Of a stretch of DNA of 64,000 nt, positions 28,746 through 60,400 are shown piece after piece (position 1 is the stretch's first letter; every line of letters begins with the position of its first letter). This DNA comes from Anaeramoeba ignava BMAN (Eukaryota; Protista; Anaeramoebae): assembly GCA_028826165.1 (NCBI GenBank), contig JAPDFW010000014.1, forward strand, positions 16,475 through 80,474, in the 5' to 3' direction. The position numbers and the translations under genes are program-made. Below the pieces are notes generated by a model, which made no database searches, was not told the DNA's origin, and saw only the letters and a program-made list of their open reading frames with translations.

Positions 28746-28789
28746 TTTTTAATTTTTTTCATTTTTCATTTTTCATTTTTTTATTTAAA

Positions 28790-30279
28790 ATGGAAACTTA
28801 TTTAAATTTAGAAAAACTTTCAAATGATTTAAAAAATTTATTTCAAAATCAAAATGAAAATCAAAATCAAAATGAAAACCAAAATGAAAGTTATTTTGAT
28901 TTTGAAATAATTTGTGAACAAAAAGAAATTTCATTTAAAACTCATAAATCAATTCTTTCTTCAAGAAGTGAATATTTTAAATCCCTTTTTAAATCTAAAA
29001 TGAAAGAATATCAAGAAAATAAATTAATTCTAAAAGATGTTTCAAGTTCAATTCTATTTTCAATTTTGAATTATTTTTATTCAGGAAAAATTGAAATTAA
29101 TTCAGAAAATGCAATTCAAATTTTAATTTTTTCATCAAAATATTTAATTGATGAATTAATTGAAATTGTTCAAAATTTATCAAAAAGAATTTACAATTTG
29201 AAACTATTGTTGATGTTCTTAAATTATCTGAATCAATGAACATAAATCAATTAATAGATTCTTCTTATCAATTTATTTTTGAAAATTTTGAAAAATTTAT
29301 TAAAACTCCATTTTTTCTTGAACTTGAAGAAAATCATTTAAATTCAATTTTATTAAATGATAATATTCCAATAAAAGAATTTGGACTATTTCAATCAATA
29401 ATAAAATGGGGAAAACATAAATCAAATATTAATCAAGAAATGAATAAAAAAGAAAAAAAGAAATTACAAAATCAAATTTCCAATATTATTGATAAAATTA
29501 GATTTATTGATTTCTCAAAACAAGAACTTGAAGAAACTTTGAAACAAGATTTAATTCCAAATCAAATTTCAGAAAAATTAATTGATTTCCAAATATTACA
29601 AAACAGAAATCAAAAAATCAAAAAGAATTGGAAAAAATTAACACAATTTATTGAAAAAGAAAACTTATTAATTTTCAAAAGAAGAATAAAATTGAGATCA
29701 ACAATTATTGAAGAAAAAGAACATTTTGATAAATTAAAAGAATGGATAAATGATAACGAATTCTTTTCCAAAATGAAATTAGGATATTCAGCAAAAAGAT
29801 ATGGATTTAATTGTAAAAACTGGCATTCAGTAATTGATAATAAAGGAAAAACATTAATTATTATCAAAACCACAAACAATTATATTTTTGGAGGATTTAC
29901 TTCAGTTGGATTTTTAAGTGATGAAACAAAATGGAGTATTAAACGTTCTCCAATAAAAGGATGTATTAAAGATGAAGACGCATTTCTATTCAGTATCAAA
30001 AATCCAAGAAATGATCCTCCTCAAAAATTTCCAATTAGAAAAGAAGAATCAGATAATGCAATTATGTATAATTTAGAAAATGGTCCAATTTTTGGATATT
30101 CTTCAGATTATCTTCAGAATGATATTTGCTTATATGGAAATCTTCAAGGTTACACAAATTTTGGTTGTAGATACACTCTTCCTAATGGATTAACTTTCAA
30201 TACAAACAAAGCTAAAAATTATTTAACAGGTTCTTTTAAAAAATGGAGAGTGAATGAACTTGAATGTTTTTTTATTTAA
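28790..30279 (+). CDS. BTB-BACK-TLDc protein (copy B, frameshift near 29167)
   Basis: FKTHKSILSSRSEYFKSLF, FLELEENHLNSIL..LFQSIIKWG..IRF and TLDc motifs. Comparison with copy C shows one T missing (EICSKF becomes EIVQNL). Confidence 0.9.
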
Positions 30280-30312
30280 AAACGAATTTTTTGATTTGGT
30301 TAAAAAAGAAAA

Positions 30313-31822
30313 TTATTTTTGAATATGAATTATTGCTTTAAGTTTAATTTCTTTCTTGTTTTCTCCTTCTTCTAATTCAATATTAAATTCCAATCTTAAA
30401 TTTAAGAATTTTTCTTTGATTTCTTCTTGAAGAGTAATAAATTCTTTAATATAAACTTTATTGTTATAAATTGCAATATTTGATGATTTCAAATCTTCGA
30501 TTATTGTTTGTTTAGATGGACTTCCACTTTGGAAAAAAGATTCTTGAAATTTTTGAACAATAAAATTAGTTGGAGAATTTTGATTTTCTAATAATGAAGA
30601 TTCAAGAGAGAATTTTAAACTGTTGATTTGAATTGAAGTTGAAGATAAATTTGTGAAAACAATAAAAACTTCAGTTTTTTCTTTTGTTTTGAAAATGGGA
30701 TAATTTAATAAAGTAATTTTAGGTAATTCTAATAATCCAAAATTTTGGATTTTAAATCGAACATTTTGTTGAAGATCAGGTTTAATAAGAGGATGTCCAC
30801 AAGATAGACAAAGTCTTCCTTTCTTTGATTTGAGTTTAATTCTTTTTGGAAATAAATCCCTTAATTTTTTAAAATAAATTTTCAGATAAATTTTTGAATA
30901 AAATAAAATAAATTTTTTAAATTGAATCAAATTTACTTCTCATTTTTTGGTTGATTTGGAATTTCTTGTAATTTTCGTTCTAAATTAATTGCTATAAATT
31001 AAAAATTAAAATTAAAATTCATTATAAAAATTAAAATTGAAATTCAAATTTACATTCATTTAAATCAATATTTCCAAATAATTCCTTTTTTTCAATTTCA
31101 TCATCAATAATTGAATCTTTATCAACATTTTTACTTCTAATAATAACTTCTTTTTCTCTTTTTTCCAATTCATTTTCCAATTCAGAAACAGTAACTCTTT
31201 CTTTAGGATTATTTGACAAAACAGAAGAAAATTGAGTTGATAAAGATTGATTTGAAATGGGATGATATAAATAGTTTGATTTATAAGGAGAAGAAACCAT
31301 TTTTAAAGGTGAATTTAAAGGTGAATTTCTTGGAGATGAATATTTAAATAGATTTTTTGTTGGATTAATTTTCTTGTTATAATAATTAATCAACTGTTTC
31401 AGTTGCTTTTGATTTTCAACTGTAATTTTTTGCTCCTTTTCATTCTGAATAATTATATTGATTAATGACTTAATATTTTCAGTTTCAATTCCAATTTCTT
31501 TAGTTGTCCAATTGCAATAATTGCATTTTAAAGAATAACTTGATATAGTTTCATTTTGGTTTTCAACCATTGGCGAAAGTTGGCTAGAACATCTTGGACA
31601 TTCAAAATGCTTTTGTGATTTTCCTTGTATTTGATTTATTTCTGATAATCCAAATGTGTCAAAACTAACTGGACAATAATATTGAATTATTTCTTCAAAT
31701 GTGCAATTATTACAATAGAATTTCCCACATGATTTGCAATAATAAGTATCTTCTGCCCCTACTTTCTCTCCACAATTACATTCATAGAGTATATTTACTT
31801 TATTTGCTTCAGGATTTAACAT
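30313..31822 (-). CDS. DCTN4: Dynactin subunit 4 (p62), 3 exons
   Basis: Cys pattern YECNC..YYCKSCGKFYCNNC..EEI..YYCP..FECPRC..LKCNYCNWTTKEIGI and LFPKRIKLKSKKGRLCLSCGHPLIKP..RFKI. A short middle exon lies at about 30937-30992. Confidence 0.9.
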
Positions 31823-31884
31823 TTTTATTTTATTATTTTTTTTTGAAAAGAAAAAAATGAATTTTAAAAAAATTGAAAAAAATA

Positions 31885-33530
31885 TTTTTAATAATTTTAA
31901 TTTAATTAATTTCAATATTTTTTAAATTTATTTTGAAAATGAACGAAATATTTAAATTATTTAATTTAATATTGATTTGGAAATTTATATTTCTTTATAA
32001 ATTAATTTTTAATTTTTTAATAATATTTTTAATTAATTTTTTAATAATTTTAATTTAATTAATTTCAATATTTTTTAAATTTATTTTGAAAATAAACAAA
32101 TTATTTAAATTATTTAAATTAATATTGATTTGGAAATTAATATTTCTTTATAAATTAATTTTAATTTTTTAATAATTTTTTTAATTAATTTTTTAATAAT
32201 TTTAATTTAATTAATTTCAATATTTTTTAAATTTATTTTGAAAATAAACAAATTATTTAAATTATTCAAATTATTATTGATTTCAAAATTAATATTTCTT
32301 TATAAATTAATTTTAATTTTTAATAATATTTTTAATTAATTTTTAATAATTTTAATTTAAATAATTTCAATATTTTTAAATTTAATTTTAAAATAAACAA
32401 AATATTTAAATTATTTAATTTATTATTGATTTCAAAATTAATATTTCTTTATAAATTAATTTTAATTTTTAATAATATTTTTAATTAATTTTTAATAATT
32501 TTAATTTAATTAATTTCAATATTTTTAAATTTATTTTGAAAATGAACGAAATATTTAAATTATTTAATTTAATATTGATTTGGAAATTTATATTTCTTTA
32601 TAAATTAATTTTTAATTTTTAATAATATTTTTAATTAATTTTTAATAATTTTAATTTAATTAATTTCCAATATTTTTTAAATTTAATTTGAAAATGAACA
32701 AAAATATTTAAATTATTTAAATTAATATTGATTTGGAAATTAATATTTCTTTATAAAGTGTTTTTGATTTTTTTAATAATTTTTTTAATTAATTTTTAAT
32801 AATTTTAATTTAATTAATTTCAATATTTTTAAATTTAATTTGAAAATAAACAAATTATTTAAATTGTTTAATTTATTATTGATTTGGAAATTTATATTTC
32901 TTTATAAATTAATTTCAATTTTTAATTATATTTTTAATTAATTTTTAAATAATTTTAATTTAATTAATTTCAATATTTTTAAATTTAATTTGAAAATAAA
33001 CAAATTATTTAAATTATTTAATTTATTATTTATTCCAAAATTAATATTTCTTTTATAAATTGTTTTTAATTTTTAATAATATTTTTAATTAATTTTTAAA
33101 TAATTTTAATTTAATTAATTTCAATATTTTTAAATTTAATTTGAAAATAAACAAAATATTTAAATTGTTTAATTTATTATTGATTTTGAAATTAATATTT
33201 CTTTTATAAATTAATTTCAATTTTTAATTATATTTTTAATTAATTTTTTAATAATTTTAATTTAATTAATTTCAATATTTTTTAAATTTAATTTGAAAAT
33301 AAACAAATTATTTAAATTATCTAATTTATTATTGATTTGGAAATTTATATTTCTTTATAAATTAATTTCAATTTTTTAATAATATTTTTAATTAATTTTA
33401 TTAATAATTTTAATTTAATTAATTTCAATATTTTTTAAATTTAATTTGAAAATAAACAAATTATTTAAATTGTTTAAATTAATATTGATTTCAAAATCAA
33501 TATTTCTTTATAAATTATTTTTAATTTTTT
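31885..33530. repeat. About 151-bp satellite, about 11 copies, upstream of DCTN4
   Basis: ATAATTTTAATTTAATTAATTTCAATATTTT recurs at about 31891, 32044, 32196 and onward. Confidence 0.9.
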
Positions 33531-33531
33531 T

Positions 33532-35073
33532 TTAAATGAAATAAGTTTCAAGTTCATCAACAATCCATGAAGAATAAGAACCAGCTAAATAACTATTTGC
33601 TTCATTTGTGTTAAAATCAATTCCATTAGGCATATTGTAACTAAAACCAAAATTTGAAGCACCAGTTTTTAAATTTTTATTTAGAAAAAAATCGCACCAA
33701 TATCCAAAAGCAGGACCATTCTCTAAATAATTATAAAAAAGTGCAGTTTTTTCTTTTCCTTTTTTAATTGTAAATTTTTCAGGATTTCTATCATTTTTAT
33801 CATTTCTTAATGAAAAAATAAATGCATCTTTATCTAAAATATATATTCGTTCATCATAATAATCTTCATAATCTTCATCTTCATAATCTTCATAATCTTC
33901 ATCTTCATCATAAATAAATTCATTCAATTTTACTTCATTCCATTTTGATTGATCATTTGTAAATCCAACTGAAGTAAATCCTCCAAAAATATAATTATTT
34001 GTGGTTTTGATAATAATTAATGTTTTTCCTTTATTATCAACTTTATCATGCCAATTTTTACAATTAAATCCATCTCTTTTTGCTGTATATCCTAATTTCA
34101 TTTTGGAAAAGAATTCGTTATCATTTATCCATTCTTTTAATTTATCAAAATGTTCTTTTTCTTCAATAATTGTTGAAGAATTCAATTCAAATCTTGTTTT
34201 GAAAATTGATAAGTTTTCTTTTTCAATAAATTCTTTTAATTCTCTTTTATCTTTTTCGTTTTGAAGTTTTTGGAATTGGATTAATTTTTCTGAAATTTGA
34301 TTTGGAATTAAATCTTGTTTCAAAGTTTCTTCAAGTTCTTGTTTTGAGAAATCAATAAATCTGATTTTATCAATAATATTGGAAATTTGATTTTGTAATT
34401 TCTTTTTTTCTTTTTTATTCATTTCTTGATTGATATTTGATTTATGTTTTCCCCAGTTTATTATTGATTGAAATATTTCAAATTCATTTATTGGAAATTC
34501 ATAATTTAATAAAATTGAATTTAAATGATTTTCTTCAAGTTCAAGAAAAAATGGAGTTTTAATAAATTTTTCAAAATTTTCAAAAATAAATTGATAAGAA
34601 GAATCTATTAATTGATTTATGTTCATTGATTCAGATAATTTAAGAATATCAACAATAGTTTCAATTTGTAAATTCTTTTTGATAAATTTTGAACAAATTT
34701 CAATTAATTCATCAATTAAATATTTTGATGAAAAAATTAAAATTTCAACTGCATTTTCTGAATTAATTTCAATTTTTCCTGAATAAAAATAATTCAAAAT
34801 TGAAGATAGAATTGAACTTGAAACATCTTTTAGAATTAATTTATTTTCTTGATATTCTTTCATTTTAGATTTAAAAAGAGATTTAAAATATTGACTTCTT
34901 GAAGAAAGAATTGATTTATGAGTTTTAAATGAAATTTGATTTTGTTCACAAATTATTTCAAAATCAAAATAACTTTCATTTTGGTTTTCATTTTGATTTT
35001 GATTTTGATTTTGATTTTGAAATAAATTTTTTAAATCATTTGAAAGTTTTTCTAAATTTGAATAAGTTTCCAT
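33532..35073 (-). CDS. BTB-BACK-TLDc protein (copy C, intact, 513 aa)
   Basis: Single ORF, nearly identical to copy B through BTB-BACK and the start of TLDc, with an acidic YED-repeat insertion inside TLDc. Confidence 0.93.
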   Translation of the reverse strand: METYSNLEKLSNDLKNLFQNQNQNQNQNENQNESYFDFEIICEQNQISFKTHKSILSSRSQYFKSLFKSKMKEYQENKLILKDVSSSILSSILNYFYSGKIEINSENAVEILIFSSKYLIDELIEICSKFIKKNLQIETIVDILKLSESMNINQLIDSSYQFIFENFEKFIKTPFFLELEENHLNSILLNYEFPINEFEIFQSIINWGKHKSNINQEMNKKEKKKLQNQISNIIDKIRFIDFSKQELEETLKQDLIPNQISEKLIQFQKLQNEKDKRELKEFIEKENLSIFKTRFELNSSTIIEEKEHFDKLKEWINDNEFFSKMKLGYTAKRDGFNCKNWHDKVDNKGKTLIIIKTTNNYIFGGFTSVGFTNDQSKWNEVKLNEFIYDEDEDYEDYEDEDYEDYYDERIYILDKDAFIFSLRNDKNDRNPEKFTIKKGKEKTALFYNYLENGPAFGYWCDFFLNKNLKTGASNFGFSYNMPNGIDFNTNEANSYLAGSYSSWIVDELETYFI

Positions 35074-37659: not shown

Positions 37660-40372
37660 ATGGAAAAAAAAAAAGACAAATATAAAAAAAAGAACAAATT
37701 GCCAGAAGGAGATAATTTTATAGCAACAAAATTACTTGGAAAAGGTTCTTATGGAACAGTTTATTTAGGAGAAACTAAAGATACAAAAGAAACTTGTGCA
37801 ATTAAAGAAATTATTATAAAAAAAAGTAGAAATGAAAGAAAAATGGTATTAAGAGAACTTAAAATAATGGAAAAAATTAAACATGAAAATTGTGTTGATT
37901 TATTTTTTATTGAACCAAAAAATTATCAAAAAGTAAATTTAATTTAAAAAAGCAAAAAAAAATTTAATTAAAAAATGGAATAAAAATTAAAATTATTAAA
38001 AAATTAATAATAAATAAAAAGGCTGATTTAGTTTATATTGTTATGGAATATTGTGATATGGGTGATTTAAAAGAATATATAAATTCAAAAACAAATATTT
38101 CTATTGAAGAAGTTAAAGAAATATTTGGGCAAATGGGTATAATTTATTTTTCTTTTTCAAATTAAAATCAAAATTAAAATCAAAATTAAAATCAAATTTC
38201 ATTTACAAAATTAAAATCAAAATTAAAATCAAAATTAAAATTAAAATTAATTTATAAAATTAAAATTAAAATCAAATTTAAAATTAAAATCAAAATTTAA
38301 TTTAAAATTATAATTATAATTAAAATCAAAATTAAAATCAAAATTAAATTTAAATTTAAAATTAAAATTCATTTATAAAATTAAAATTAATTTATAAAAT
38401 TAAAATTAAAATTAAAATTAAAATTAAAATTAAATAGTTATTATGATGCAAGTTCTTGATAAAAACAGAATTGTTCATAGAGATTTAAAACCACAAAATA
38501 TTCTTCTTTTATCAAATCCACAATCAAATTTTGAATATACACTTAAATTAGCAGATTTTGGATTAGCAAGAGAAATTCCAAAAGAAGATGAAAAAAATGA
38601 AGGAATTCAAACTCTTGTTGGAACACCTTTATATATGGCACCAGAAGTTAGAAATTTAACAATAAAAATCAATCAATCAATTAATCATTTAATCAATTGA
38701 TTTAATTCAAAAAAAATTATTTAAAAATAGATTTTATCCAATAAACCTTATACTTCAAATGTTGATTTATGGAGTTTAGGTGTAATTTTATATGAAATTA
38801 TTACAACAAAATGTCCTTTTCTAGGATTTAAATTATCAGATTTATCTGAACATTTTAGAAGTTTTACAAAAAAATCACTTCCAAAAGAATATTTAGTAAA
38901 TCTAAAATATATTTAATTCAAAAATATATTTAATTCAAAAATATATTTAATTCAAAAATATATTTAATTCATATTTAATTCATATTTAATTCAAATTTAA
39001 TTCAAATTTAATTCAAATTTAATTCAAATTTAATTCAAATTTAATTCAAATTTAATTCAAATTTAATTCATATTTAATTCATATTTAATTCATATTTAAT
39101 TCAAATTTAATTCAAATTTAATTCATATTTAATTCAAATTTAATTCAAATTTAATTCAAATTTAATTCATATTTAATTCATATTTAATTCATATTTAATT
39201 CAAATTTAATTCATATTTAATTCAAAAATAAATTTAATTCATATTTAATTCAAATTTAATTCAAAAATATATTTAATTCATATTTAATTCAAAATCAAAA
39301 TCAAAATCAAAATTAAAATCAAAATTCAAATTTAATTCAAAAATATATTTAATTCATATTTAATTCAAAATCAAAATTAAAATCAAAATTAAAATCAAAA
39401 TTAAAATCAAAATTAAAAAAGAAAATTGTTCCAAAAGAATGTAATGACTTAGTTGAAAAATTATTAACTGTTGATCCAAATTCAAGAATTACAAGAAAAG
39501 AATTATATAATCATTCTTTCATTTCTGCAAAATTAGTAAATTATTCCAAAATTGAAAATTTTAATCTTTATTCACAAAATTAAAAATTCAAATTTCATAA
39601 ATAGAAAAATTTATCCAATAATTTTGTTGATAATACAGAACAAGAAAAGGAAATGATTGGAGTTACAAAAGAGACATTTCAAAGCACAGAAAATGGAAAA
39701 CTTTCATTTAAAAAAGAAGATGTTATTGAAATTATTAAAATCAATAAAGATGAAGGAATTTGTGAAGGAAAATTAAAAGAAAAAGAAGGAATTATTGAAT
39801 TAAAAAAGATTGATTTATATAAAGAAATTCCAGACATTTTTTCAATGATTCAATCAAATAATAATAATAACAACAATCAATTAATTAATTTCGAAAAAAG
39901 AATTATTGGAATTTCTAAATTTGAATATAAATCAAATGAAATTTCATTATCAAAAGGAGATTTAGTTAAAATTATCAAAATTAATCAAGAAAATGATTAT
40001 TGCAAAATTAAATTCCGAAATCAAAAAGATGAAATTCTTTTATTCTTTTTGATTTTTTATGAAATAATTGAAAAAAATGATGAAATTAATGAAAATGATA
40101 ATGAAAATGATAATGAGAAGAAAAAGAAAAACAAAAACAAAAACAAAAACAAAAACAAAAATCAATTAGTTGATGAAATAACAAAAAAAAAATTTGGAAT
40201 TGCAAAAGTTAATTCAGGAAATGATGAAGATGATGATGATGATAATTTCCTTTCTTTTTCAAAAGGAGATGAAGTTGAAATTATTGAAGATGATGGAGAA
40301 ATGGGAATTGGAAAATTAAATGGAAAAGAAGGAGAAATTTTTATGGATGATTTTGATATTCAAGAAAATTAA
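37660..40372 (+). CDS. Ser/Thr kinase (ATG1/ULK-like catalytic domain) plus 3 divergent SH3 domains; K1, motifs intact, 6 exons
   Basis: [59 protein letters not shown]. The last exon has three LSFxKG(D/E)x(I/V)EII..G-type SH3 units. Confidence 0.9.
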
Positions 40373-40448
40373 ATTTAAAATCAATTCCACTTTTTTTTTC
40401 TTTTTCATTTTTTAATTTTTCATTTTTCATTTTTCAATAAAAAACAAA

Positions 40449-42759
40449 ATGGAAAAAAAAAATGAAAAAGAAAATCTTCCTCAAGGAAATAATTTTATTT
40501 CAACACAATTAATTGGAAAAGGTTCTTTTTGGAAAAGTTTATTTAGGAAAAATTAAAGATACAAAAGAAATTTGTGCAATTAAAGAAATTAATTTAAAAG
40601 AATTTGAAAAAGAAAAAGAAAAAATAATCAAAGGAATTGAATTGATGAAAAAAATTAAACATGAAAATTGTGTTGAATTATTTTTTATTGAACCAGAAAA
40701 TTATCAAAAAGTGAATTTAATTAAAATTAAAAAATTAAAATTATTAATTAAAATTATTAATAAATAAAAAGGCTGATTTAGTTTATATTGTTATGGAATA
40801 TTGTTCTATTGGTGATTTAAAGAAAATTATTCGATCTCAAAATCAAAGATGTGAAAGAATTCCTATTGAAGAAGTTAAAGAAATATTTGGACAAATTTGT
40901 ATTATTTTTAAAAATTTAAATCAAAATCAAAATCAAAATCAAAATCAAAATCAAAATCAAAATTAAAATTAAAATTAAAATCAAAATCAAAATCAAAATT
41001 TAAATTAATTAGTGAAAGGATTGAAATATTTATATCAAAATCAAATTGTTCATCATGATTTAAAACCCGAAAATATTCTTCTTAAACAAGATTATAATTC
41101 TAAATTTGGATATTCAATTAAATTAGCAGATTTTGGATTTGAAAGAATAATTCAAAAAGAAAATGCAAAAAATGAATTAGAAATTGAAAAATTTTTTGGA
41201 AAATCTTTATATATTGAACCAGAAGTTTGGAATAATATTTTATAACTGAATTGAATTGAATATTGAATATTGAATATTGAATATTGAATATTGAATTAAA
41301 TATTGAATATTAAATATTGAATTGAATATTGAATTAAATATTGAATTGAATATTAAATTGAATAAAAATTATTGAATTGAATAAATATTGAATATTGAAT
41401 CGAATATTGAATTGAATATTTGAAATTGAATATTGAATTGAATATTGAATTGAATATTAAAATTGAATAAATAAATATTGAATTGAATATTGAATTAAAT
41501 ATTGAATAAATTGAATTGAAATTGAATCGAATATTGAATATTGAATATTGAATATTGAATATGAATATTGAAATTGAATATTGAATATTAAATATTGAAT
41601 TAAATTGAATAAATAATAAATTAAATATTGGAATTAAAATATTGAATTAAATATGAATAAATCGAAAAATGAATATTGAATCGAAATTGATATTGAATAA
41701 TGAATATTGGAATGAATGAATTGAATAAAAAAATGCCAAAAATGAATATTGAATGAATATTGAATTAAATATTGAATCGAATATTGAATATTGAATGAAT
41801 ATTGAAAATTGAATTGAATATTGAATTAAATTGAATTAAATATGAATTGAATTGAATATTGAATTAAATATTGAATTGGTGAATAATTAAATTAAATATT
41901 GGAATTGAATCGAATTGAATCGAATATTGAATTGAATATTGAATGAATTGAATATTGAATTGAATATTGAATGGAATTGATTGAATGAATATTGAATTGA
42001 ATATTAAATATTGAATTGAATATTTGAATATTAAAATAATAAATGAAATTGAATATTAAATATAATGGAAAATTGAATGAATATTGAATCAAATATTGAA
42101 TTAAATATTGAATTGAATATTGAATTGAATATTGAATTGAATATTAAATATTGAATTGAATATTGAATTGAATATTGAATATTGAATTGAATATTGAATA
42201 TTGAATTGAATATTAAATATTGAATATTAAATTGAATATTGAATTGAATATTGAATTGAATTTAATATTAAATATTGAATTGAATATTAAATTAAATTTT
42301 TTCAATCAAATTTATTTAAAAATAGATTTTATTCAATCAACCTTATACTTCAAATGTTGATTTATGGAGTTTAGGTGCAATTTTATATGAAATTATTGCA
42401 AGAAATCCTCCTTTTGAAGCTAATGATCTTGATGATTTAGAAAAACAATATCAAAACACAATAAAAAAATCACTTCCAGATTCTTTTTTAGTAAATTTAA
42501 AAATTAATTACTTTAAATCATTTCAAAATTTAATCCAAATAATTGTAAAAATAAAAATAGAAAATTATTCCAAAAGAATGTAATGATTTAGTTGAAAGAT
42601 TATTAACTGTTGATCCAAATTCAAGAATTACAAGAGAAGAATTATATAAACATCCTTTTATTTTTGAAAAATTAGTAAATTAATTCAAATTCCCAAAATT
42701 TTCCAAAATTTAAAAATTAATTAAAAATAATTTTTATTATTATTATTTAATAGAAATAA
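40449..42759 (+). CDS. Kinase paralogue K2, degenerate (pseudokinase or pseudogene), SH3 lost
   Basis: Extra T in the Gly-loop codons (about 40526-40530), alphaC Glu changed to Gly, HHDLKPEN, KSLYIEPE. A TAA at 42757-42759 precedes a truncated SH3 remnant. Confidence 0.75.
41250..42300. repeat. (AATATTGAATTG)-type microsatellite in kinase intron 3; also at about 44500-45110 and 47095-47320
   Basis: Same repeat type in the equivalent intron of K2, K3 and K4. Confidence 0.9.
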
Positions 42760-43131
42760 TTAATTAATGAAAATTCAAAGAAGAAAATATTTGGAATTGC
42801 TAAAATTGATTCTCAAAATGATGATGATGATTTCCTTTCTTTTTCAAAAGGAGATAAAGTTAAAATCAAAATTAAAATAAAATTAAAATTAAAATTCCAA
42901 AAAAGGAGAATAAGAATAAAAAAATATTTTAAAAAATTCCATCAAAATTCAATTCAAAATTAAAATCAAATTAAAATTAAAATTCCAAAAAAGGAGAATA
43001 AGAATAAAAAAATATTTTAAAAATTCCACTTTTTTTTCTTTTAAAAATAAATTTCGAAAAATAATTTTTTTTAATTTTTATTTTTCATTTTTTTTTTCAA
43101 TTTAAAAAAACAAAAACAAAAAAACAAAAAA

Positions 43132-45775
43132 ATGGAAAAAAAGATAATTTTAGAAGGAGATAATTTTATTGCAACAAAATTAATTGGAATACATTCTTCT
43201 GGAAAAGTTTATTTAGGAGAAACTAAAGATACAAAAAAAACTTGTGCAATTAAAAAAATTAATTTAAAAAAAGATAAATCAAAAAGAAACACGACATTAA
43301 GACAAATTAGAATAATGAAAAAAATTAAACATGAAAATTGTGTTGATTTATTTTTTATTGAACCAAAAAATTATCAAAAAGTAAATTTAATTTAATTTAA
43401 TTTAATTTAATTTAATTTAATTTAATTTAATTTAATTAAAAATGGAATAAAAATTAAAATTATTAAAATTTAATAATAAATAAAAAGGCTGATTTGATTT
43501 ATATTGTTATGGAATATTGTAGTATGGGTGATTTAAATCAGTATCTTAAATCAAAAACAAATATTTCTATTGAAGAAGTTAAAGAAATGCTTGGTCAAAT
43601 TGGTATTATTTATTTTTCTTTTTCAAAATCAAATTAAAATTAAAATCAAATTCAAATCAAATTCAAATTCAAATTCAAATTCAAATTAAAAATCAAAATC
43701 AAATTCAAAATCAAATTCAAAATCAAATTCAAATTCAAATTCAAATTCAAATTCAAATTCAAATTCAAAATCAAAATCAAAATGAAATTGAAAATCAAAA
43801 TCAAAATCAAAATCAAAACCAAAATCAAAATCAAAATTAAAATCAAAATAAAAATCAAAATTATAAATTAAAAATTAAAATCAAAATCAAATTCAAAATC
43901 AAATTCAAAATCAAAATCAAATTCAAAATGAAAATCAAAATCAAATTCAAATTCAAATTCAAAATCAAATTCAAAATTAAAATTAAAATTAAAATCAAAA
44001 TCAAAATCAAAATTAAAATTAAAATCAAAATCAAATTCAAAATTAAAATCAAAATCAAAATTAAAATTAAAATTAAAATCAAAATCAAATTCAAAATTAA
44101 AATCAAAATCAAAATCAAATTCAAAATTAAAATTAAAATTAAAATAAAAATCATAAATTAAATTCAAAATCAAAATTAAAATCAAAATCAAAATTAAAAT
44201 TATAAATTCAAATTCAAATTAAAATTAAAATTAAAATCAAAATAAAAATTAAAATTAAAATTAGTGAAAGGATTGAAATATTTATATCAAAAAGATATTC
44301 TTCATCGAAATTTAAAACCTGGCAATATTCTTCTTCAATCAAATGATAATTCTGAATTTGGATACACAATTAAAATAGCAGATTTTGGATTTGCAAGAAT
44401 GATTCGAAGAGATGATTTAGGAGAAACTATAGAAATGGATTTATATGTTGGAACACCTTTATATGTTGCACCAGAAGTTTGGAATAATATTATATAATTG
44501 AATTAAATTGAATTAAATATTGAATATTGAATTGAATATTGAATATTAAATATTAAATATTGAATTGAATATTGAATTGAATATTGAATTGAATATTAAA
44601 TATTGAATTGAATATTGAATATTGAATATTAAATATTAAATATTGAATTAAATATTGAATTGAATATTGAATTGAATTAAATTGAATTAAATATTGAATA
44701 TTGAATATTAAATATTGAATTGAATATTAAATTAAATATTGAATTAAATATTGAATTGAATATTAAATTGAATATTGAATATTAAATACTGAATTGAATA
44801 TTGAATTAAATATTGAATTAAATATTAAATATTGAATTGAATATTGAATATTTAATATTGAATTAAATATTGAATTGAATATTAAAATATTAAATTAAAT
44901 ATTGAATATTGAATATTAAATTGAATATTAAATTGAATATTAAATTGAATATTGAATTGAATATTAAATTAAATATTAAATATTGAATATTGAATATTAA
45001 ATTGAATTAAATTGAATTAAATATTAAATATTAAATATTGAATTAAATATTAAATTAAATATTAAATTGAGTATTAAATTGAATATTGAATATTGAATTG
45101 AATATTGAATTTTCAATTAAATTTTTTCCAAAAATAGATTTTATCCAATAAACCTTATACTTCAAATGTTGATTTATGGAGTTTAGGTGCAATTTTATAT
45201 GAAATTATTACAGGATATCCTCCTTTTGAGGCTGAAAATCGCAATGATTTAGAAAATCAATTAAAAAAAGCAACAAAAAAATCACTTCCAAAAGAATATT
45301 TAGTAATTTAAATAATTCAAAATTTAAATAATTCAAAATTCAAATAATTTAAAAATTTAATTGTTAAAAATTTTAAAGAAAATTATTCCAAAAGAATGTA
45401 ATGATTTAGTTGAAAGATTATTAACTGTTGATCCACATTCAAGAATTAAAAGAGAAGAATTATATAAACATCCTTTTATCCCTGAAGAATTAGTAAATTA
45501 ATTCAAATTCCCAAAATTTTCCAAAATTTAAAAATTAATTAAAATAATTTTTTATTATTATTATTTAATAGAAAAAATTAATTAATGAAAATTCAAAGAA
45601 GAAAATATTTGGAATTGCTAAAATTGATTCTCAAAATGATGATGATGATTTACTTTCTTTTTCAAAAGGAGATAAAGTTAAAATTATTGAAATTGATGGA
45701 GAAATTGGAATTGGAAAATTAAATGGAAAAGAAGGAGAAATTTATATTGATGATTTTGATATAAAAAAAAAATAA
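43132..45775 (+). CDS. Kinase paralogue K3, pseudokinase plus 1 SH3
   Basis: Gly loop GIHSSG, alphaC LRQ (E to Q), HRNLKPGN (catalytic D to N). Frame and splice sites appear intact. Confidence 0.85.
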
Positions 45776-45973
45776 TTTCCAATCAAAACCAAAATCAAAA
45801 TCAAAATCAAAATCAAAAGAAGAAAAAATATTTTTTAAAAAATTCCACTTTTTTTTCTTTTAAAAACAAAAAAAACAAAAAAAGCAAAAAAATTAAAATA
45901 AAAAAAGGAAAAATAATTTTTTTTAATTTTTCATTTTTTTAAATTTAAAAAAACAAAAACAAAAAAACAAAAA

Positions 45974-48119
45974 ATGGAAAAAAAGATAATTTTAGAAGGA
46001 GATAATTTTATTGCAACACAATTTATTGGAGAAGGTTCTTTTGGAAAAGTTTATTTAGGAGAAACTAAAGATACAAATCAAATTTGTGCAATTAAAAAAA
46101 TTAAGTTAAAAAACAAAGAAGAATTAGAAAGAAAAATGACATTAAGAGAACTTGAAATAATGAAAACAGTTAAACATGAAAATTGTGTTGATTTATTTTT
46201 TATTGAACCAGAAGATTATCAAAATGTAAATTTAATTTAATTTAATTAAAAAAAAAAAAAGCAAAAATTTAATTAAAAAAAAAAGAAGCAAAAATTTAAT
46301 TTAATTAAAAATGGAATAAAAATTAAAAAATTATTTACTTTATAAAAATTATTAATAAATAAAAAGGCTGATTTAGTTTATATTGTTATGGAATATTGTG
46401 GTATGGGTAATTTAAACGAGTATATTGATTCAAAAACACAAGGAAATGAAAGAATTCCTATTGAAGAAGTTAAAGAAATATTTGGACAAATTTGTATTAT
46501 TTATTTTCCATTTTCAAATAAAAATTAAAATCAAAATCAAAATTAAAATTAAAATTAAAATTAAAATTAAAATTAAAATCAAAATCAAAATTAAAATCAA
46601 AATCAAAATCAAAATTAAAATCAAAATCAAAATCAAAATTAAAATTAAAATCAAAATTAAAATTAAAATCAAAATCAAAATCAAAATCAAAATTAAAATC
46701 AAAATCAAAATTAAATTCAAATTCAAAATCAAAATTAAAATCAAAATCAAAATAAAAATTAAAATCAAAATCAAAATCAAAATCAAAATCAAAATCAAAA
46801 TCAAAATAAAAATCAATTTCAAAATTAAAATCAAATTCAAAATTAAAATTAATTTTAAAATTAGTGAAAGGATTGAAATATTTATATCAAAAAAATATTG
46901 TTCATCGAGATTTAAAACCTGAAAATATTCTTCTTCAAAAAAATATTGATTCTAAATTTGGATATACAATTAAATTAACAGATTTTGGATTTGCAAGAGA
47001 AATTCCAAAAGATGATTTAGGAAAAACTCAAATAATGAATACATTTATTGGAACACTTTCATATGTTGCACCAGAAGTTTGGAATATTATTATATAATTG
47101 AATTAAATTGAATTAAATATTGAATTGAATATTGAATATTGAATATTGAATTAAATATTGAATTAAAAATTGAATTAAATATTGAATTAAAAATTGAATT
47201 GAATATTGAATTAAATTGAATTGAATATTGAATTGAATATTGAATTGAATTTAATATTAAAAATTGAATTAAATATTGAATTAAAAATTGAATTGAATAT
47301 TGAATTAAATTGAATTAAATTTTTTAATTAAATTTTTCCAAAAATAGATTTTATTTAATAATTCTTATACTTCAAATGTTGATTTATGGAGTTTAGGTTC
47401 GATTTTATATGAAATTATTACAGGAAATCCTGCTTTTCAAGCTTTTGGTCGTAATTCTTTAGAAACAAAATACCAAAACACAATAAAAAAATCACTTCCA
47501 AAAGAATATTTAGTAATTTAAATAATTCAAAATTTAAATAATTCAAAATTCAAATAATTTAAAAATTTAATTGTTAAAAATTTTAAAGAAAATTGTTCCA
47601 AAAGAATGTAATGATTTAGTTGAAAGATTATTAACTGTTGATCCACATTCAAGAATTAAAAGAGAAGAATTATATAAACATCCTTTTATTTTTGAAAAAT
47701 TAGTAAATTATTTCAAATTCCAAAAAAATATTTCAAAAAAAGAATTTATATTCCAAAAAAAAATATTTTAAATTAATAAATAGAATGAATTAATTGGAGA
47801 TTCAAATCAAGAATTAACTAATGAAAATTCAAATCAAGAATTAAATAATGAAAATTCAAATCAAGAATTAAATAATGAAAATTCAAATCAAGAATTAATT
47901 AATGAAAATTCAAATCAAGAATTAATTAATGAAAATTCAAAGAAGAAAATATTTGGAATTGCTAAAATTGATTCTCAAAATGATGATGATAATTTCCTTT
48001 CTTTTTCAAAAGGAGATGAAGTTGAAATTATTGAAATTGATGGAAAAATTGGAATTGGAAAATTAAATGGAAAAGAAGGAGAAATTTTTATTAATGATTT
48101 TGATATAAAAGAAAATTAA
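45974..48119 (+). CDS. Kinase paralogue K4, motifs intact, 9-aa repeat linker plus 1 SH3
   Basis: [35 protein letters not shown]; the linker has five SNQELxNEN units. Confidence 0.88.
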
Positions 48120-48647
48120 TTTCCAATTTAAAAATTCAATTTAAAATTTAAAATCAAAATCAAAATCAAAATCAAAATCAAAATCAAAATCAAAATCAAA
48201 ATCAAAATCAAAATTAAAATTAAAATCAAAATCAAAATCAAAATCAAAATTAAAATTAAAATTAAAATCAAAATCAAAATCAAAATCAAAATCAAAATCA
48301 AAATCAAAATCAAAATTAAAATCAAAATCAAAATCAAAATCAAAATCAAAATTAAAATTAAAATTAAAATTAAAATTAAAATTAAAATTAAAATTAAAAT
48401 TAAAATCAAAATCAAAATTAAAATCAAAATCAAAATCAAAATCAAAATCAAAATTAAAATCAAAATTAAAATCAAAATCAAAATTAAAAGAAGAAAAAAA
48501 TATTTTTTAAACAATTCCACTTTTTTTTTCTTTTTAAAAACAAAAAAAAGCAAAAAAAATTAAATTAAAAAAACAATTTTTTTTAATTTTTCATTTTTCA
48601 TTTTTCATTTTTTTTTTCAATTTAAAAAAACAAAAACAAAAATAAAA

Positions 48648-51460
<2,813 letters not shown>

Positions 51461-51656
51461 AATTTCAATTTAAAAATTAAAATCAAAATCAAAAGAAAGA
51501 AGAAAAAAATATTTTTTAAGCAATTCCACTTTTTTTTTTAATTTAAAAACAAAAAAAAAGCAAAAAAATTAAAATAAAAAAAGGAAAAATAATTTTTTTT
51601 CATTTTTTCATTTTTTTTCAATTTAAAAAAACAAAAACAAAAACAAAAAAAACAAA

Positions 51657-54211
51657 ATGGAAAAAAAGATAATTTTTGAAGGAAATAATTTTATTGCAAC
51701 ACAATTAATTGGAGAAGGAGGTTTTGGAAAAGTTTATTTAGGAGAAACTAAAGATACAAATCAAATTTGTGCAATTAAAAAAATTAAGTTAAGTAAAAAT
51801 AGAAAAATGACATCAAGAGAACTTAAAATGATGGAAGAAGTTAAACATGAAAATTGTGTTCAATTATTTTTTATTGAACCAAAAGATTATCAAAATGTAA
51901 ATTTAATTAAAAAAAAAGCAAAAAAAAATTAATTAAAAAAAAGCAAAAAAAAAATGGAATAAAAATAAAAATAAAAATAAAAATAAAAAAAATTAAAAAA
52001 TTAATTAAAAAATGGAATAAAAATATTAAATAAAATAAAAGGCTGATTCAGTTTATATTATTATGGAATATTGTGATATGGGTAATTTAAATGAATATCT
52101 TAAATCAAAAAAAGATAAAAATGAAAAACTTTTTATTGAAGAAGCTAAAGAAATATTTGGACAAATTGGTATTATTTATTTTTCATTTTCAAATTAATTC
52201 CAAAATCAAAATCAAAATCAAAATCAAAAAATCAAAATCAAAATCAAAATCAAAATCAAAATTAAAATTAAAATTAAAATCAAAATCAAAATCAAAATCA
52301 AAATCAAAATCAAAATCAAAATCAAAATCAAAATCAAAATCAAAATTAAAATCAAAATCAAAATCAAAATCAAAATCAAAATCAAAATCAAAATCAAAAT
52401 CAAAATCAAAATCAAAATTAAATTCAAAATCAAAATCAAAATCAAAATCAAAATCAAAATCAAAAATCTAAATCAAAATTCAAATTCAAAAATAAATAGT
52501 GAGAGGATTGAAATATTTATATGAAAAAGGGATTGTTCATCGAAGTTTAAAACCTCAAGATATTCTTCTTCAATCAAACAATAATTCTAAATTTGGATAT
52601 ACAATTAAATTAGCAGATTTTGGATTTGCAAGAAAAATTCAAAGAGATGATTCAGGAAAAACTATAATGATGAACTCAATTGTTGGAACACCTTTATATA
52701 TAGCACCAGAAGTTTGAAATATATTTTTTAAAAATAATAAAATCAATTTATTTTATTGAATTTTAATTTTGAAATTGGAAAAAATAGATTTTATTTAATA
52801 ATTCTTATACTTCAAATGTTGATTTATGGAGTTTAGGTGCAATTTTATATGAAATTATTACAGGAAATCCTCCTTTTCAAGCTAAAAGTCTTGGTGATTT
52901 AGAACGACAATATAACAATACAATCAAAAAATCACTTCCAAAAGAATATATTGTAAAATTTTAATTCAAAATCAAAATCAAAATTAAAATTAAAATCAAA
53001 ATCAAAATTCAAAATCAAAATCAAATTCAAAATCAAAATCAAATTCAAAATTCAAATTCAAATCAAAATCAAAATCAAAATCAAAATCAAAATTAAAATT
53101 AAAATTAAGGAAATTTTTGGAAAAGAATGCAATGATTTAATTGAAAAATTATTAACTGTTGATCCAAATTCAAGAATTACAAGAGAAGAATTATATAAAC
53201 ATCCTTTTATTTCTAAAAAATTAGTAAATTATTTTAAATTCCCAAAAAAAAGAATTTATATTCCAAAAAAAAATATTTTAAATTAATAAATAGAATGAAT
53301 TAAAGGAAAAATCAATAGAAATTGCAGATTTAGAAAAGAAAATAATTGGAATTGCAAAAGAAGATTTTGAAAGCAAAGAAAATGGAAAATTTTCATTTAA
53401 AAAAGGAGATGTTATTGAAATTATTAAAATTAATAAAAATAAAGGAATTTGTGAAGGAAAATTAAAAGAAAAAGAAGGAATTATTGAATTAAAAAGAATT
53501 GATTTATATGAAGAAATTGAAGATATTTATTCAATAAATGAATTAAATAATAATAATGATAATCAATTAATTAATTTTGAAAAAAGAATTATTGGAATTG
53601 TTTCAAATGAATATAAAACAAATGAAATTTCATTATCAAAAGGAGATTTAATTGAAATTAATAATATAAATGATAATAATTATTGTATAATTCAATTTGG
53701 AAATCAAAAATATGAAATTCCTTTTTTCTTTTTTGATTTTTATAAACAAATTGGAGAAAAACAAAAACAAAAACAAAAACAAAATCCAAAGAAAATAATT
53801 GGAATTGCAAAAGAAGATTTTGAAAGCAAAGAAAATGGAAAATTTTCATTTAAAAAAGAAGAAATTATTGAAATTATTGAAATTTATAAAAATAAAGGAA
53901 TTTGTGAAGGAAAATTAAAAGAAAAAGAAGGAATTATTGAATTAAAAAGAATTGATTTATATGAAGAAATTGAATATATTTATTCAATAAATGAATCAAA
54001 TAATAATAATGATAATCAAACAAATAATCTTGAAAAAAGAACTATTGGAATTGTTAAATTTGAATATAAAACAAATGAAATTTCATTATCAAAAGAAGAT
54101 TTAGTTGGAATTATCAATATAAATGAAGATGATATTTATTGTATGATTCAATTTAGAAATCAAAAATATGAAATTCCTTTTTTCTTTTTTGATTTTTATA
54201 AAAAAATTTAA
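51657..54211 (+). CDS. Kinase paralogue K6, pseudokinase plus 4 SH3 (duplicated pair)
   Basis: HRSLKPQD (catalytic D to S, N to D), DFG retained. The last exon carries two copies of the IGIAKEDFESKENGKFSFKK / IGIV..EYKTNEISLSK pair. Confidence 0.85.
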
Positions 54212-54435: not shown

Positions 54436-57400
54436 ATGACATTATTTCAATCAAATTTTTTTTATATTTCAGAAAATATTTCAACAAATCCAAAAAAACT
54501 TTTTAATATTTTAATTCAAAATGGAGGAAAAGTATTAGAAGATTTTAATGAAAATGCATTTATAATTTCAGAAATTGATCCAAATGTTTATTAATAAAAA
54601 ATAAAAAAGAAAAAAGAAAAAAAATTTAATTTAAAATTTAATTTAAAATTTAAAATTTAAAAACAAAAGAAATTTAATCAATATCCTTCAAATCTTATTA
54701 CACCTAATTTTATTTATGAATCTATTTCTCTCAGTAAAAAAATTATGAAATTAAATCATCCATTTCATTCTTATTGTTTAAATGGAGAAAATATATATTT
54801 TAACAATTTATCGACTAATAAACATGTAAATAATTAAATTATAAATAAAATTATAAATAAAATTATAAATTAAATTATAAATTAAATTATAAATAAAATT
54901 ATAAATAAAATTATAAATTAAATTATAAATAAAATTATAAATTAAATTATAAATAAAATTATAAATTAAATTATAAATTAAATTATAAATTAAATTATAA
55001 ATTAAATTATAAATTAAATTATAAATTAAATTATAAAATTATAAATAAAAATTATAAATTAAATTATAAATTATAAAATAAAATTATAAATCAAAATTAT
55101 GTAAATTAAATTATAAATTAAATTATAAATTAAATTATAAATAAAATTATAAATTAAATTTATAAATAAAAATTATAAATAAAAATTATAAATAAAATTA
55201 TAAATAAAAATTATAAAAAATAAAAATATAAATATAAATTAAAATTAAAAAATAAAAATTATAAATAAAATTAAAATTAAATTATAAATTAAAATTATAA
55301 ATTAAATTATAAATAAAAATATATAAAAAAATTATAAAATTAAAATTATAAATTAAATTATAAATAAAATTATAAATTAAATTATAAATTAAATTATAAA
55401 TAAATTATAAATTAAATTATATAAATTAAAATTATAAATTAAATTATAAAATAAAATTATAAATTAAATAAATTATAAATTAAAATTATAAATTAAATTA
55501 TAAATAAAAATATATAAAAATTAAAATTATAAATAAAATTATAAATAAAATTATAAATAAAATTATAAATAAATTAAAATAAAATTATAAATAAAAATAT
55601 ATAAATTAAATTATAAACAAAAATTATAAATAAAAATTATAAATTAAAATATAAAAAAAATTATAAAATAAAAATTATAAATTAAAATTATAAATAAAAT
55701 TATAAATTAAAATTATAAATTAAATATATATAAAATTAAAATTATAAATTATAAAATTAAATTATAAATTAAAATAAAAAATTATAAATTAAAATTATAA
55801 ATAAAATTATAAATAAATAAAATTATAAATAAAATTATAAATAAAATAAATCATAAAAATAAAATTATAAAATTAAAATAAAATAAAAAAATATAAAAAA
55901 AATTATAAATAAAATTATAAATAAAATCAAATTATATAATTAAAATTATAAAATTAAATTATAAATTAAATTATAAAATAAAATTATAAATAAAAATATA
56001 AATAAAATATAAATTAAATATAAATAACAAAATTATAAATAAAATTATAAAAATAAAATAAATAAAATTATAAATAAAATTATAAATAAAATTATAAATA
56101 AAATTATAAAATAAAAATTATAAATAAAATTATAAATTAAATTATAAATTAAATTAGTATAAATAAAATTATAAATTAAATTAAAATAAAATTATAAAAT
56201 AAAATTATAAAATAAAATTATAAATAAAAATTATAAATAAAATTATAAATAAAAAAATAAATAAAATTAAAAAAATTATAAAAAAAAATTATAAAATAAA
56301 TTATAAAATGTATAAAATAAAATTATAAATTAAATTATAAATTAAAACATATAAATAAAATTATAAAATAAAAATTATAAAAAAATTATAAATAAAATTA
56401 TAAAAAAAAATTATAAATAAAAATATAAATTAAAAATATAAAATTAAATTTATAAAAATTAAATTATAAATTAAATTATAAATTAAAATTATAAAGAAAA
56501 ATTATAAATTAAATTATAAATTAAATTATAAATAAAATTATAAATAAAATTATAAAATAAAATTATAAAAAATTAAAATAAAATAAAAAAAAATATAAAT
56601 TAAAATATAAATTAAAAATATAAATTAAAAATTAAAATAAAATAAAATTATAAAAATAAAATTATAAATTAAAATTATAAATATAAAAATATAAATAAAA
56701 TTATAAATTAAATTATAAATAAAATTATAAATTAAATTATAAACAAAAATTATAAATTAAAATTATAAATTAAATTATAAATTTAAATTATAAATTTAAA
56801 TTATAAATAAAATTATAAATTAAATTATAAATTAAATTATAAATAAAAATTATAAATTAAATTATAAATTAAATTATAAATAAAATTATAAATTAAATTA
56901 TAAATAAAATTATATTAAAAAAAAATATAAATAAAATTATAAATTAAAATTATAAAAATAAAAATATAAATTAAATTATAAATAAAAATTATAAATAAAA
57001 TTATAAATAAAATTATAAATTAAATTATATAAATAAAATTATAAATATAAATTAAAAATAAAATTAAAATTATAAATAAAAATTATATAAATTAAATTAT
57101 AAATTAAAATTATAAATTAAAATTATAAATTAAATTATAAATAAAAATTATAAATAAAATTATAAATAAAATTATAAAATAAATTAAAAATAAAATAATA
57201 AATAAAATAATAAAATTATAAATAAAATTATAAACAAAAATAATATATAAATTAAATTATAAATTTAAATTATAAATTAAATTATAAATTAAAATCTACT
57301 ATAAATTAAATTATAAATTAAATTATATAAATAAATTATAAATTAAAATTATAAATAAAAATTATAAATTAAATTATAAATTAAAATTATAAAAAAAATT

Positions 57401-60400
57401 ATAAATTAAATTATAAAAAAAAAATTATAAATAAAATTATAAATTAAATTATAAAATAAAATTATAAATTAAAAATAAAATTATAAATAAAATTATAAAA
57501 TAAAATTATAAATTAAATTATAAATTAAATAAAATAAAATATAAATAAAATTATAAATAAAATTATAAATAAAATTATAAATTAAATTATAAATTAAATT
57601 ATAAATAAAATTATAAATTAAATTATAAATTAAATTATAAATAAAATTATAAATAAAATTATAAATTAAATTATAAATTAAATTATAAATAAAATTATAA
57701 ATAAAATTATAAATAAAATTAAAAATTTAAAGAAAAAAATTCTGTTTCAAATTCTTTGTATGAATGGTCAATATTCTACAGAAATTACTCCACAAGTTAC
57801 ACATATAATTATTGATATAAGTGAAGAAAATAGACAAATCATTAATGATCCAAGAGTTATTGATATTGAATGGATTGAACAATGTTGGAATAATCATAGA
57901 AACATTAAATCAATTATTTTCCCACAATTTTCAAAATGTTGCATTTCAACAACTGGATTTTCTGAAGAAGAAACAAAAAATATTGAAAATTTGATTAATA
58001 AATTTTCAGGAGAAATACATTCTGCTTTTATAAAAAAAACCACACATCTTATAACAAAAATATCCTTTATAAAACAATTTATATATTTATAATTATATTT
58101 TATATTTATATTTTATATTTATATTTATATTTATATTTATATTTATATTTATACTTATAATTAGATTTATATTTATATTTATATTTATATTTATATTTAT
58201 ATTTATATTTATATTTATATTTATATTTATATTTATATTTATATTTATATTTATATTTAGATTTAGATTTTATTTATATTTATAATTAGTTTCATTTTTC
58301 CTTGACTGTTAATAATTTTTTTTATTAATATTATTGATAATAATACATATTTAAAGGTTCAAAATATGAATCAGCAATTAGACAGAAAAAAACTATTGTT
58401 ACAATTGATTGGTTGAGAAAAATGATTTTATTAACAGGTAATTTAAATATTTATATATATTTATATAGTTATATTTATATTTAAATTTTTAGAAAGAAAT
58501 CAATTTTTCCGAAATTGTATATTTTATTTTGATCCTAATTCTATTAAAAGTTCAATCATTTCAATTCTTAAAGAAAATGTTTTGAAATTTGGTGGAATAT
58601 ATTTAGATAATTTTAATAATCAAGTTACTCATTTAATTATTCAAAGAACTGATGGAGAATATTATTATCAACCTGAATGGAGTGAAAATTCTAAAATTAT
58701 TGATATTGAATGGATAAATGAATGTCTCAGAAAAAAAAAACTTGTAAATATATCAAATTTCTCCATTTTTCCAACAAATTTAACAGAAGAATCAAGTTTT
58801 AGATCAAGTTTAACAACAAATCAAAATGTATTAAGTAATGAAATTTCAAGTGATTCAAAAATTTCACAAAATTCAAGAACAAATTCAATTGCTATTGATG
58901 ATATTTATAAAAGAAAATCAAAATCATTTAATAAAAAGAAAAGAGATTCAAATATTGATATTGATATTGAATTTGGAAATCAAAATCAAAATCAAAATCA
59001 AGATCAACAAATCAAAAGACAAAAACAAAGAAAACAACAGAAAAATACAGAAAAAGAAATTATTCCAAAATCAATTCCAATTAATAATCTTAAAAATCCT
59101 GAAATTTCAATTAGTCTAAATAGAAACATAGAAAATATTTCAATAGAAAATGAAAAAGAAATTTCAAAATTAAATTTATCAGCAAATTATCAACAAAATA
59201 CTTTAGAATATATTGAAAAACAAAATGAAATATCAGGACTTAATTACGAACCTTATGAAGCAAATAATTTATTTCAAGGAATCTCTTTTGTGTTTGTTCA
59301 AGTAACAAAAAAAGATGAAGAAGATTGTTCTAAACTTATTAAAGAACATGGAGGAAAAATAGAAGATAAAATCACAAATGAAACCAAATACATTTTAGTA
59401 TCACATGGAGCAAATATATTGATAAGTGAAAAATTTTAGAGAAACATATGAAGAAATATTAGTTTCTAAAAATTGGTTAGAAAAGATGTTGTTTTAAAAC
59501 ATTGATTTATAATCCAAGAGAATATTGTATTTTCAAACCTTTAAAAAGCTATTCCATTTGAATTTATGAAACAATTCCGAATATCTTTATCAGGATTTAA
59601 AAAACAAATGAAAATTAAAAATAAATACATTATCAAACAACTTGGAGCAAAATTTACAGGAACATTATCAAGAAAAATACACATTTGATTTGCAGAGAGA
59701 AGCTAAAGGGAATAAATACAAAAAGCAATTTTATGGGGAATCAAAATTCAAATGAAAATGGCTTTGTTTATATTGCAGAAAGTGGAGAATATTTAAATGA
59801 AAATGATTTTTATTTTTAATCAAGAAAGAAAAATCAAATTTAAATACAAATACAAATACAAATACAAATTCAAATCAAAAACTGAAATTGATCTTTTTGA
59901 ATTAGATTCAACTCCTCAAAAATTCGAAATTTCAAACATTAGAATATTCTAAACCAAGAAATTCAATAAAATCAATAAATAGTGATTTTAGTTCACCTTT
60001 ATATCGCAAAAAAATAACAGATAGTAAATTATTCAGAAAGTAATTCTGATATAAGTTATAGTTTAGATACAGATGCATATAATTATGAAGTTGATGAGTT
60101 TTTAGATGATACTCAAGAACAATTTATATTTTATATTCTTTCAAAAACCAAAAATAAACTCAGATTAAAAGAAATTGTTTCTTCAACATTGAATTCAGCA
60201 TGTTGTGAAAAGATTAATATCAGATGTTACTCATGTGATTTATTCAAAAGAAGATGAAGAAAAGTGAAGAATATAAAGAAGCATTATCTTTGAAAAAGAT
60301 TCTTGTTAAAGATGAAGATGTTTATGAATTTTTGATGATCCAATTAAACTTACAAATTTTTTGAAATCAAATCGAAAAATTCAAATGAAAAACATCAAGT

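Follow-up and report, generated by a model that had tools for sequence, protein, structure and literature searches.

A predicted U12-type AT-AC intron within the BRCT domain of a Dpb11/TopBP1-like gene of Anaeramoeba ignava

In Anaeramoeba ignava, a Dpb11/TopBP1-like gene loses its reading frame in the middle of a BRCT domain, and the question that this locus raises is whether the break marks an intron of the minor (U12-type) spliceosome and, if so, which parts of the minor-splicing machinery the genome encodes. We examined the gene within the window (the whole stretch of DNA that was analysed, 64,000 nt on contig C16) and searched the remainder of the genome for related introns and for components of the machinery. 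An earlier note on this DNA had proposed an AT-AC intron with U12-type signals at the break and had guessed that the host was a metamonad; the guess was right, as Anaeramoeba ignava belongs to the Metamonada. We put the probability that positions 58060-58346 form a U12-type (minor-spliceosome) AT-AC intron inside the BRCT domain at roughly 0.85, judging from sequence evidence.

The signals of the proposed intron (intron 3 in Table 1) were examined first from its 5' end. Exon 3 closes with ACA AAA (THLITK) at 58059, and the break in the BRCT frame coincides with the start of ATATCCTTT. A (TTTATA)n filler follows directly, and the intron body as a whole is simple repeat of approximately 95% A+T. 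Towards the 3' end, the stretch TTTTTCCTTGACT includes TTCCTTGAC (58298-58306), the sole plus-strand match to TTCCTTRAY in the gene region. The intron then ends in TAATAC at 58346, and ATA TTT AAA GGT TCA AAA TAT begins at 58347. All of these elements matched the description in the earlier note base for base. It was noted that intron 3 combines a RTATCCTTT 5' site, a TTCCTTRAY motif, and frame-preserving AT-AC termini. In other organisms the usual distance from the U12 branch site to the 3' splice site is 10-26 nt, and intron 3 falls outside this range with 41 nt between the branch A at 58305 and the 3' splice site. The degenerate TTATTGATAA, which lies nearer to the terminal AC, is a possible alternative branch site.

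We assessed the competing splice junctions by enumerating with a script all in-frame, stop-free donor and acceptor pairs around the BRCT gap. Zero GT-AG or GC-AG pairs were found among them, in agreement with the prior claim that no GT donor is at hand. Five in-frame AT-AC pairs exist around the gap, and the U12 5' motif occurs only in the pair joining 58059 to 58347. Positions 4-49 of the BRCT Pfam profile correspond to the upstream exon and positions 55-78 to the 91-nt exon; because the profile is matched on both sides of intron 3, a single domain is split there. The sequence and the deposited model also confirmed that a GT-AG intron follows the 91-nt exon in phase 1 and that the exon after it shares the frame of ORF 58582.

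Table 1. Features of the Dpb11/TopBP1-like gene in the window (position 1 is its first letter) and related sites on other contigs
Feature	Position	Strand	Basis
Exon 1, start codon 54436	54436..54585	+	tblastn of deposited protein against window, sequence
Intron 1, ordinary GT-AG, 84 nt	54586..54669	+	tblastn, sequence
Exon 2	54670..54825	+	tblastn, sequence
Intron 2, GT-AG, 2907 nt	54826..57732	+	tblastn, sequence
Exon 3, ends THLITK in phase 0; N-terminal BRCT half	57733..58059	+	Pfam, deposited model
Predicted intron 3, AT-AC, U12-type signals, 287 nt, phase 0	58060..58346	+	sequence, frame enumeration, deposited model
U12-type 5' splice site ATATCCTTT	58060..58068	+	motif scan
Consensus U12 branch motif TTCCTTGAC, branch A 58305	58298..58306	+	motif scan
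Degenerate branch-like TTATTGATAA, 6-9 nt before 3' splice site	58331..58340	+	sequence
Terminal AC of intron 3	58345..58346	+	sequence
Exon 4, 91 nt; C-terminal BRCT half	58347..58437	+	Pfam, deposited model
Intron 4, ordinary GT-AG, 55 nt, phase 1	58438..58492	+	sequence, deposited model
Exon 5 of the deposited model; in frame with ORF 58582	58493..59425	+	deposited model, tblastn
3' region with 1-2-nt indels relative to the contig C67 copy	59426..59806	+	copy comparison
Branch A to AC, 12 nt	C64:391795		
Branch A to AC, 13 nt	C77:195028		
Branch A to AC, 14 nt	C83:361547		
Branch A to AC, 17 nt	C90:176476		
Branch A to AC, 25 or 29 nt	C1:834597		
Branch A to AC, 38 nt	C79:162235		
Branch A to AC, 37 nt	C79:166609		
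Remaining site of the extended promoter motif	C46:384557	+	
Remaining site of the extended promoter motif	C76:163012	+	
Remaining site of the extended promoter motif	C115:417853	-	
Remaining site of the extended promoter motif	C144:74053	+	

The deposited A. ignava protein (KAJ5080094.1, 598 aa) reads THLITK|IFKGSKYESA over the junction, with THLITKIFKGSKYESA / THLITKIFKGSKYESAIRQKK across 58059/58347, and so uses the same splice as the one proposed here. One may ask whether this junction is an annotation artefact that bridges a disrupted BRCT domain with no splicing at all, and the same deposited model does contain one doubtful intron (59426-59548). AT-AC introns, however, are not normally proposed by gene predictors without RNA evidence, the two BRCT halves fit at the junction, and the same intron architecture was encountered in other genes. 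The motifs themselves also speak against an artefact. Shuffled sequence yielded approximately 4.9 matches to RTATCCTT and 5.4 to TTCCTTRAY per 64 kb on both strands, corresponding to a chance of about 4e-5 per position for the 5' motif at the frame break and about 0.01 for a branch motif within 287 nt, or jointly about 1e-6 or less. Given these low rates and the correct placement of both motifs, the arrangement is far beyond chance, and we regard the artefact explanation as hardly credible.

Several further features of the gene and its surroundings were recorded. A second match in the window to the 5' motif, ATATCCTT at 54681, was rejected as a chance occurrence, as it is coding in exon 2 (CAA TAT CCT TCA). 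The examined parts of the ends of intron 2 (54826-54920 and 57400-57732) consist of tandem repeat of the AAATTATAAAT type, and between 55000 and 57727 this intron holds no ORF of at least 30 aa. One search with exon 3, the exon upstream of the break, recovered KAJ5080094.1, and a homologous protein search with it returned no matches. With the full-length KAJ5080094.1, the search recovered the protein itself and otherwise unrelated eukaryotes, with no A. flamelloides orthologue. Elsewhere in the window, a cluster of paralogous BTB-BACK-TLDc genes occupies 26334-35073, and, judged by eye, the ORFs of 37660-51932 look like kinase-like genes arrayed in tandem, their introns filled with repeats.

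A sister copy of the gene was found on contig C67 (102856-106173), where it is 97.8% identical downstream, has an intact ORF, and carries the same AT-AC intron. The 5' splice site, branch motif, 41-nt spacer, and AC are unchanged in the C67 intron, and its (TTTATA)n filler is 71 nt longer. Relative to C67, the window copy shows approximately 7 indels of 1-2 nt between 59429 and 59748, mostly in A runs, and its BRCT frame is repeatedly shifted, whereas C67 retains one continuous ORF with a proper BRCT pair. The KAJ5080094.1 model accordingly stops early at 59688, and the doubtful intron that it places at 59426-59548 is coding sequence in C67. These downstream frameshifts indicate that the window copy is possibly degenerate or poorly polished; the cause is either a lack of polishing of the long-read sequence or the decay of a duplicate, and the intron call is unaffected in both cases. 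A related reading is that the intron is genuine in the species and that the C67 copy is the functional, spliced one, the window copy being either a duplicate in decay or an alternate haplotig left unpolished. The broken frame, the uninterrupted C67 ORF, and the truncated model that omits coding sequence all point that way. Indels that lie mostly in A runs, however, follow the pattern of long-read homopolymer errors, so that the window gene may really be intact, and before 59426 the two copies differ by few substitutions and one in-frame 6-nt indel. We consider this reading rather unlikely; it would qualify the assignment of a U12-type intron at 58060-58346 without excluding it.

We sought to determine whether comparable introns occur elsewhere in the genome. 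A RTATCCTTT motif followed after 20-400 nt by TTCCTTRAY was found 36 times genome-wide, compared to 4 times for the reversed control. Antisense coding sequence with a G+C content of 20-40% accounts for part of this excess, and 12 of the 30 motif-pair loci retrieved were intron-like, with at most 17% G+C. Several of the loci are AT-rich AT-AC introns that link long ORFs in frame. It was noted that perfect TTCCTTRAY motifs occur in at least 8 independent AT-AC intron loci, including intron 3, while chance alone would supply only about 0.1 branch motifs over some 32 such introns; the canonical branch motif is therefore conserved in a good share of them. The distances from branch A to AC, derived via ORF continuity (Table 1), separate into canonical and long distances, with intron 3 among the long ones. 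The genes at C79:162235 and C79:166609, also with long spacing, are paralogues of the C64 gene and have the identical intron position. In addition, a potassium-channel pore region (TVGYGD) on the plus strand at C1:503403-503654 (L025) contains GTATCCTTT...TTCCTTGAC. No AG or AC acceptor restoring the frame was found at this locus, and the element is possibly a minor-like intron whose 3' end is non-canonical.

The RNAs of the minor spliceosome were searched for with Rfam models, and this examination recovered candidates for U6atac and U11, both below threshold. The U6atac candidate (C71:58882-58994) scored 29.9 bits with a genome-wide E of 2.7e-4, short of the Rfam gathering score of 33. It is intergenic, contains AAAGGAGAGA.GGUUAGCA (the U6atac box), and its fold (z = -2.9) includes a long 3' hairpin. 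It is also distinct from the canonical U6, which lies elsewhere (C70, 88 bits). The best U11 match, at C1:50977-51083, reached 26 bits (E 0.2) against a gathering score of 39. At the 5' end of this candidate, AAAGGA is unpaired and complementary to UCCUUU; its fold further comprises a four-way junction and a 3' hairpin, together with a UAUCAAUAC loop resembling the AUCAAGA loop conserved in U11.

These candidates share upstream elements with other snRNA genes of this genome. An exact block of approximately 30 nt, TAATTAAAT(n)CCATAATTAAAA, precedes both U6 and the U6atac candidate and has no other exact site in the genome. When upstream regions were compared (L059, L001, L066, L067, L064, L068, and L069), CCATAAT was found to precede U2 and U4, the U6atac candidate, and two short U2-like genes by some 60-75 nt. 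The corresponding distance is about 69 nt for the U11 candidate and 99 nt to the start of the U6 model. An extended 22-nt form of this promoter motif has 8 sites in the genome, among them that of the U11 candidate, and 4 of the 8 precede these snRNA genes; the others are given in Table 1.

The remaining part of the snRNA search was negative. No credible match to U12 or U4atac was obtained in genome-wide Rfam-model searches that scored 40-50 first-look candidates each, and U12 was likewise not found genome-wide by a 25-mer with 3 mismatches. The pattern GAGTAAGGAAA gave 22 matches compared to 37 in the control, and promoter-anchored U12 and U4atac patterns returned coding-antisense matches or nothing. 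Three U12 candidates were rejected, as L009 proved to be an ordinary intron's GTAAGG donor, L057 runs antisense to an ORF of 303 aa, and L058 is where a GTPase gene begins. The sole U4-like gene (C95) was rejected as U4atac, since it pairs with U6 and is thus U4. We also examined two identical 127-nt U2-like genes (C57:254345-254471 and C67:346616-346742; 52 bits), each with the promoter element. They retain an intact GUGUAGUA branch-binding region and lack the 3' half of U2. The presence of GUGUAGUA identifies them as U2 variants rather than U12, and they may be truncated ones. The Rfam U1 model likewise gave no match at E <= 1 in the whole genome. GT-AG introns are abundant, so U1 must exist and is either very divergent or missed by the search filters. 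With U1 also missed and only 40-50 candidates scored per search, the U12 and U4atac negatives are weak, and we infer that both RNAs are present.

Proteins specific to the minor spliceosome were found in part. An SNRNP25 orthologue (C116:13470-13739; Pfam PF18036, 57 bits) matched the human U11/U12-25K (PDB 8r7n, chain 8r7n_B) over its full length with E 1.2e-9, and a PDCD7/U11-59K orthologue was located at C76:310988-311749 (Pfam PF16021, 67 bits). Two proteins specific to the U11/U12 di-snRNP are thus encoded, and the zf-U11-48K domain was not found in the genome. The U12-type reading of the earlier note is supported by these two proteins, by the U6atac and U11 candidates, and by the other two-motif AT-AC introns.

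An intriguing question is whether the AT-AC intron could be removed without a separate minor spliceosome, by the major (U2-type) spliceosome or by hybrid machinery of the kind proposed for Giardia. Hybrid snRNAs are known in diplomonads (PMC6679479), and the undetected U12 and U4atac, the pairing of the only U4-like gene with U6, and the atypical branch spacing of intron 3 would all fit such machinery. The weight of these absences is reduced, however, by the loss of U1 to the same search method. A separate U6atac-like gene alongside the canonical U6 also argues against removal by major or hybrid machinery, as do the U11 candidate and the two di-snRNP proteins. U2-type AT-AC introns have an ATAAGT-like 5' splice site, whereas that of intron 3 is the full U12-type consensus. 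Removal by major or hybrid machinery therefore appears improbable, and a minor-spliceosome intron is the preferred reading. On the model of the known U12 pathway, the UCCUUU of the 5' splice site would pair first with U11 and afterwards with U6atac, and U12 would recognise a branch site. Intron 3 would then be excised between A58060 and C58346, and THLITK would be joined to IFKGSKYESA.

The novelty that the earlier note had attached to this intron did not hold. Jerlstrom-Hultqvist et al. (2024, Nat Commun; PMC11550330) reported 33 AT-AC introns in strain BMAN (Supplementary Note 1, Table S3B) and 32 introns beginning (G/A)TATCCTTT, 27 with A and 5 with G. They inferred a minor spliceosome in the Anaeramoeba lineage as probable (Supplementary Note 1) and named the RNA-seq runs SRR19421494 and SRR19421493 of A. 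ignava BMAN. For A. flamelloides, the minor-like introns that they describe are all of the GT-AG type. Intron 3 is almost certainly one of these 33 AT-AC and 27 ATATCCTTT introns, and the deposited model already uses its junction; the finding is thus correct but already known. New here are the U6atac and U11 candidates, SNRNP25, PDCD7, and the shared snRNA promoter element, as well as the canonical branch motif in at least 8 introns, some of which have an unusually long branch spacing. The accessible portions of the text and supplements of PMC11550330 name no snRNA. The supplement describes no conserved branch-point sequence and none resembling the published motif, and the canonical branch motifs seen in the A. 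ignava AT-AC introns, as sequence matches, contradict it.

Prior to PMC11550330, no U12-type introns or minor-spliceosome components had been reported for metamonads in the searchable literature. Set against those earlier metamonads, Anaeramoeba would show that the metamonad ancestor kept a minor spliceosome, with independent losses in parabasalids, fornicates, and preaxostylans, a point already made briefly in the supplement of PMC11550330. The candidate snRNAs, SNRNP25, PDCD7, promoter element, and branch motifs would make that remark a testable system. They also raise the narrower question of how strict branch-site spacing is in the Anaeramoeba lineage. A more far-reaching proposal is that Anaeramoeba has a complete working minor spliceosome, the first in Metamonada with both snRNA- and protein-level evidence, which uses the canonical branch motif, tolerates spacing up to approximately 40 nt, and has U12 and U4atac RNAs too divergent for the models. 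We advance this proposal tentatively and would place its odds somewhat below even.

Comparison with known systems shows likenesses at several distances. No minor introns or components were reported in the analysed excavates (PMC11347168), in Monocercomonoides (PMC6759080), or in diplomonads and parabasalids (PMC6679479), so that Monocercomonoides, Giardia, Spironucleus, and Trichomonas share the supergroup-level lineage of Anaeramoeba and are described without U12-type introns. Blastocystis has AT-AC-dominated minor introns (77%, compared to 27 of 32 in A. ignava), many of which are in phase 0, also a likeness to A. ignava (PMC10639083, Larue and Roy 2023). It differs in belonging to another supergroup and in possessing hundreds of very short minor introns (PMC10639083). 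With the canonical U12-type AT-AC introns of animals and plants, intron 3 shares /ATATCCTTT, TTCCTTRAY, the terminal AC, and the lack of a polypyrimidine-tract requirement, and the U11 and U6atac candidates are complementary to UCCUUU as in those systems. Unlike animal and plant U12 introns, it has a branch spacing of 41 nt rather than 10-26 nt and a repeat body of approximately 95% A+T. The A. ignava intron set of PMC11550330 is of the same organism and the same class as intron 3, and against that account, intron 3 and at least 7 other independent loci carry a perfect TTCCTTRAY.
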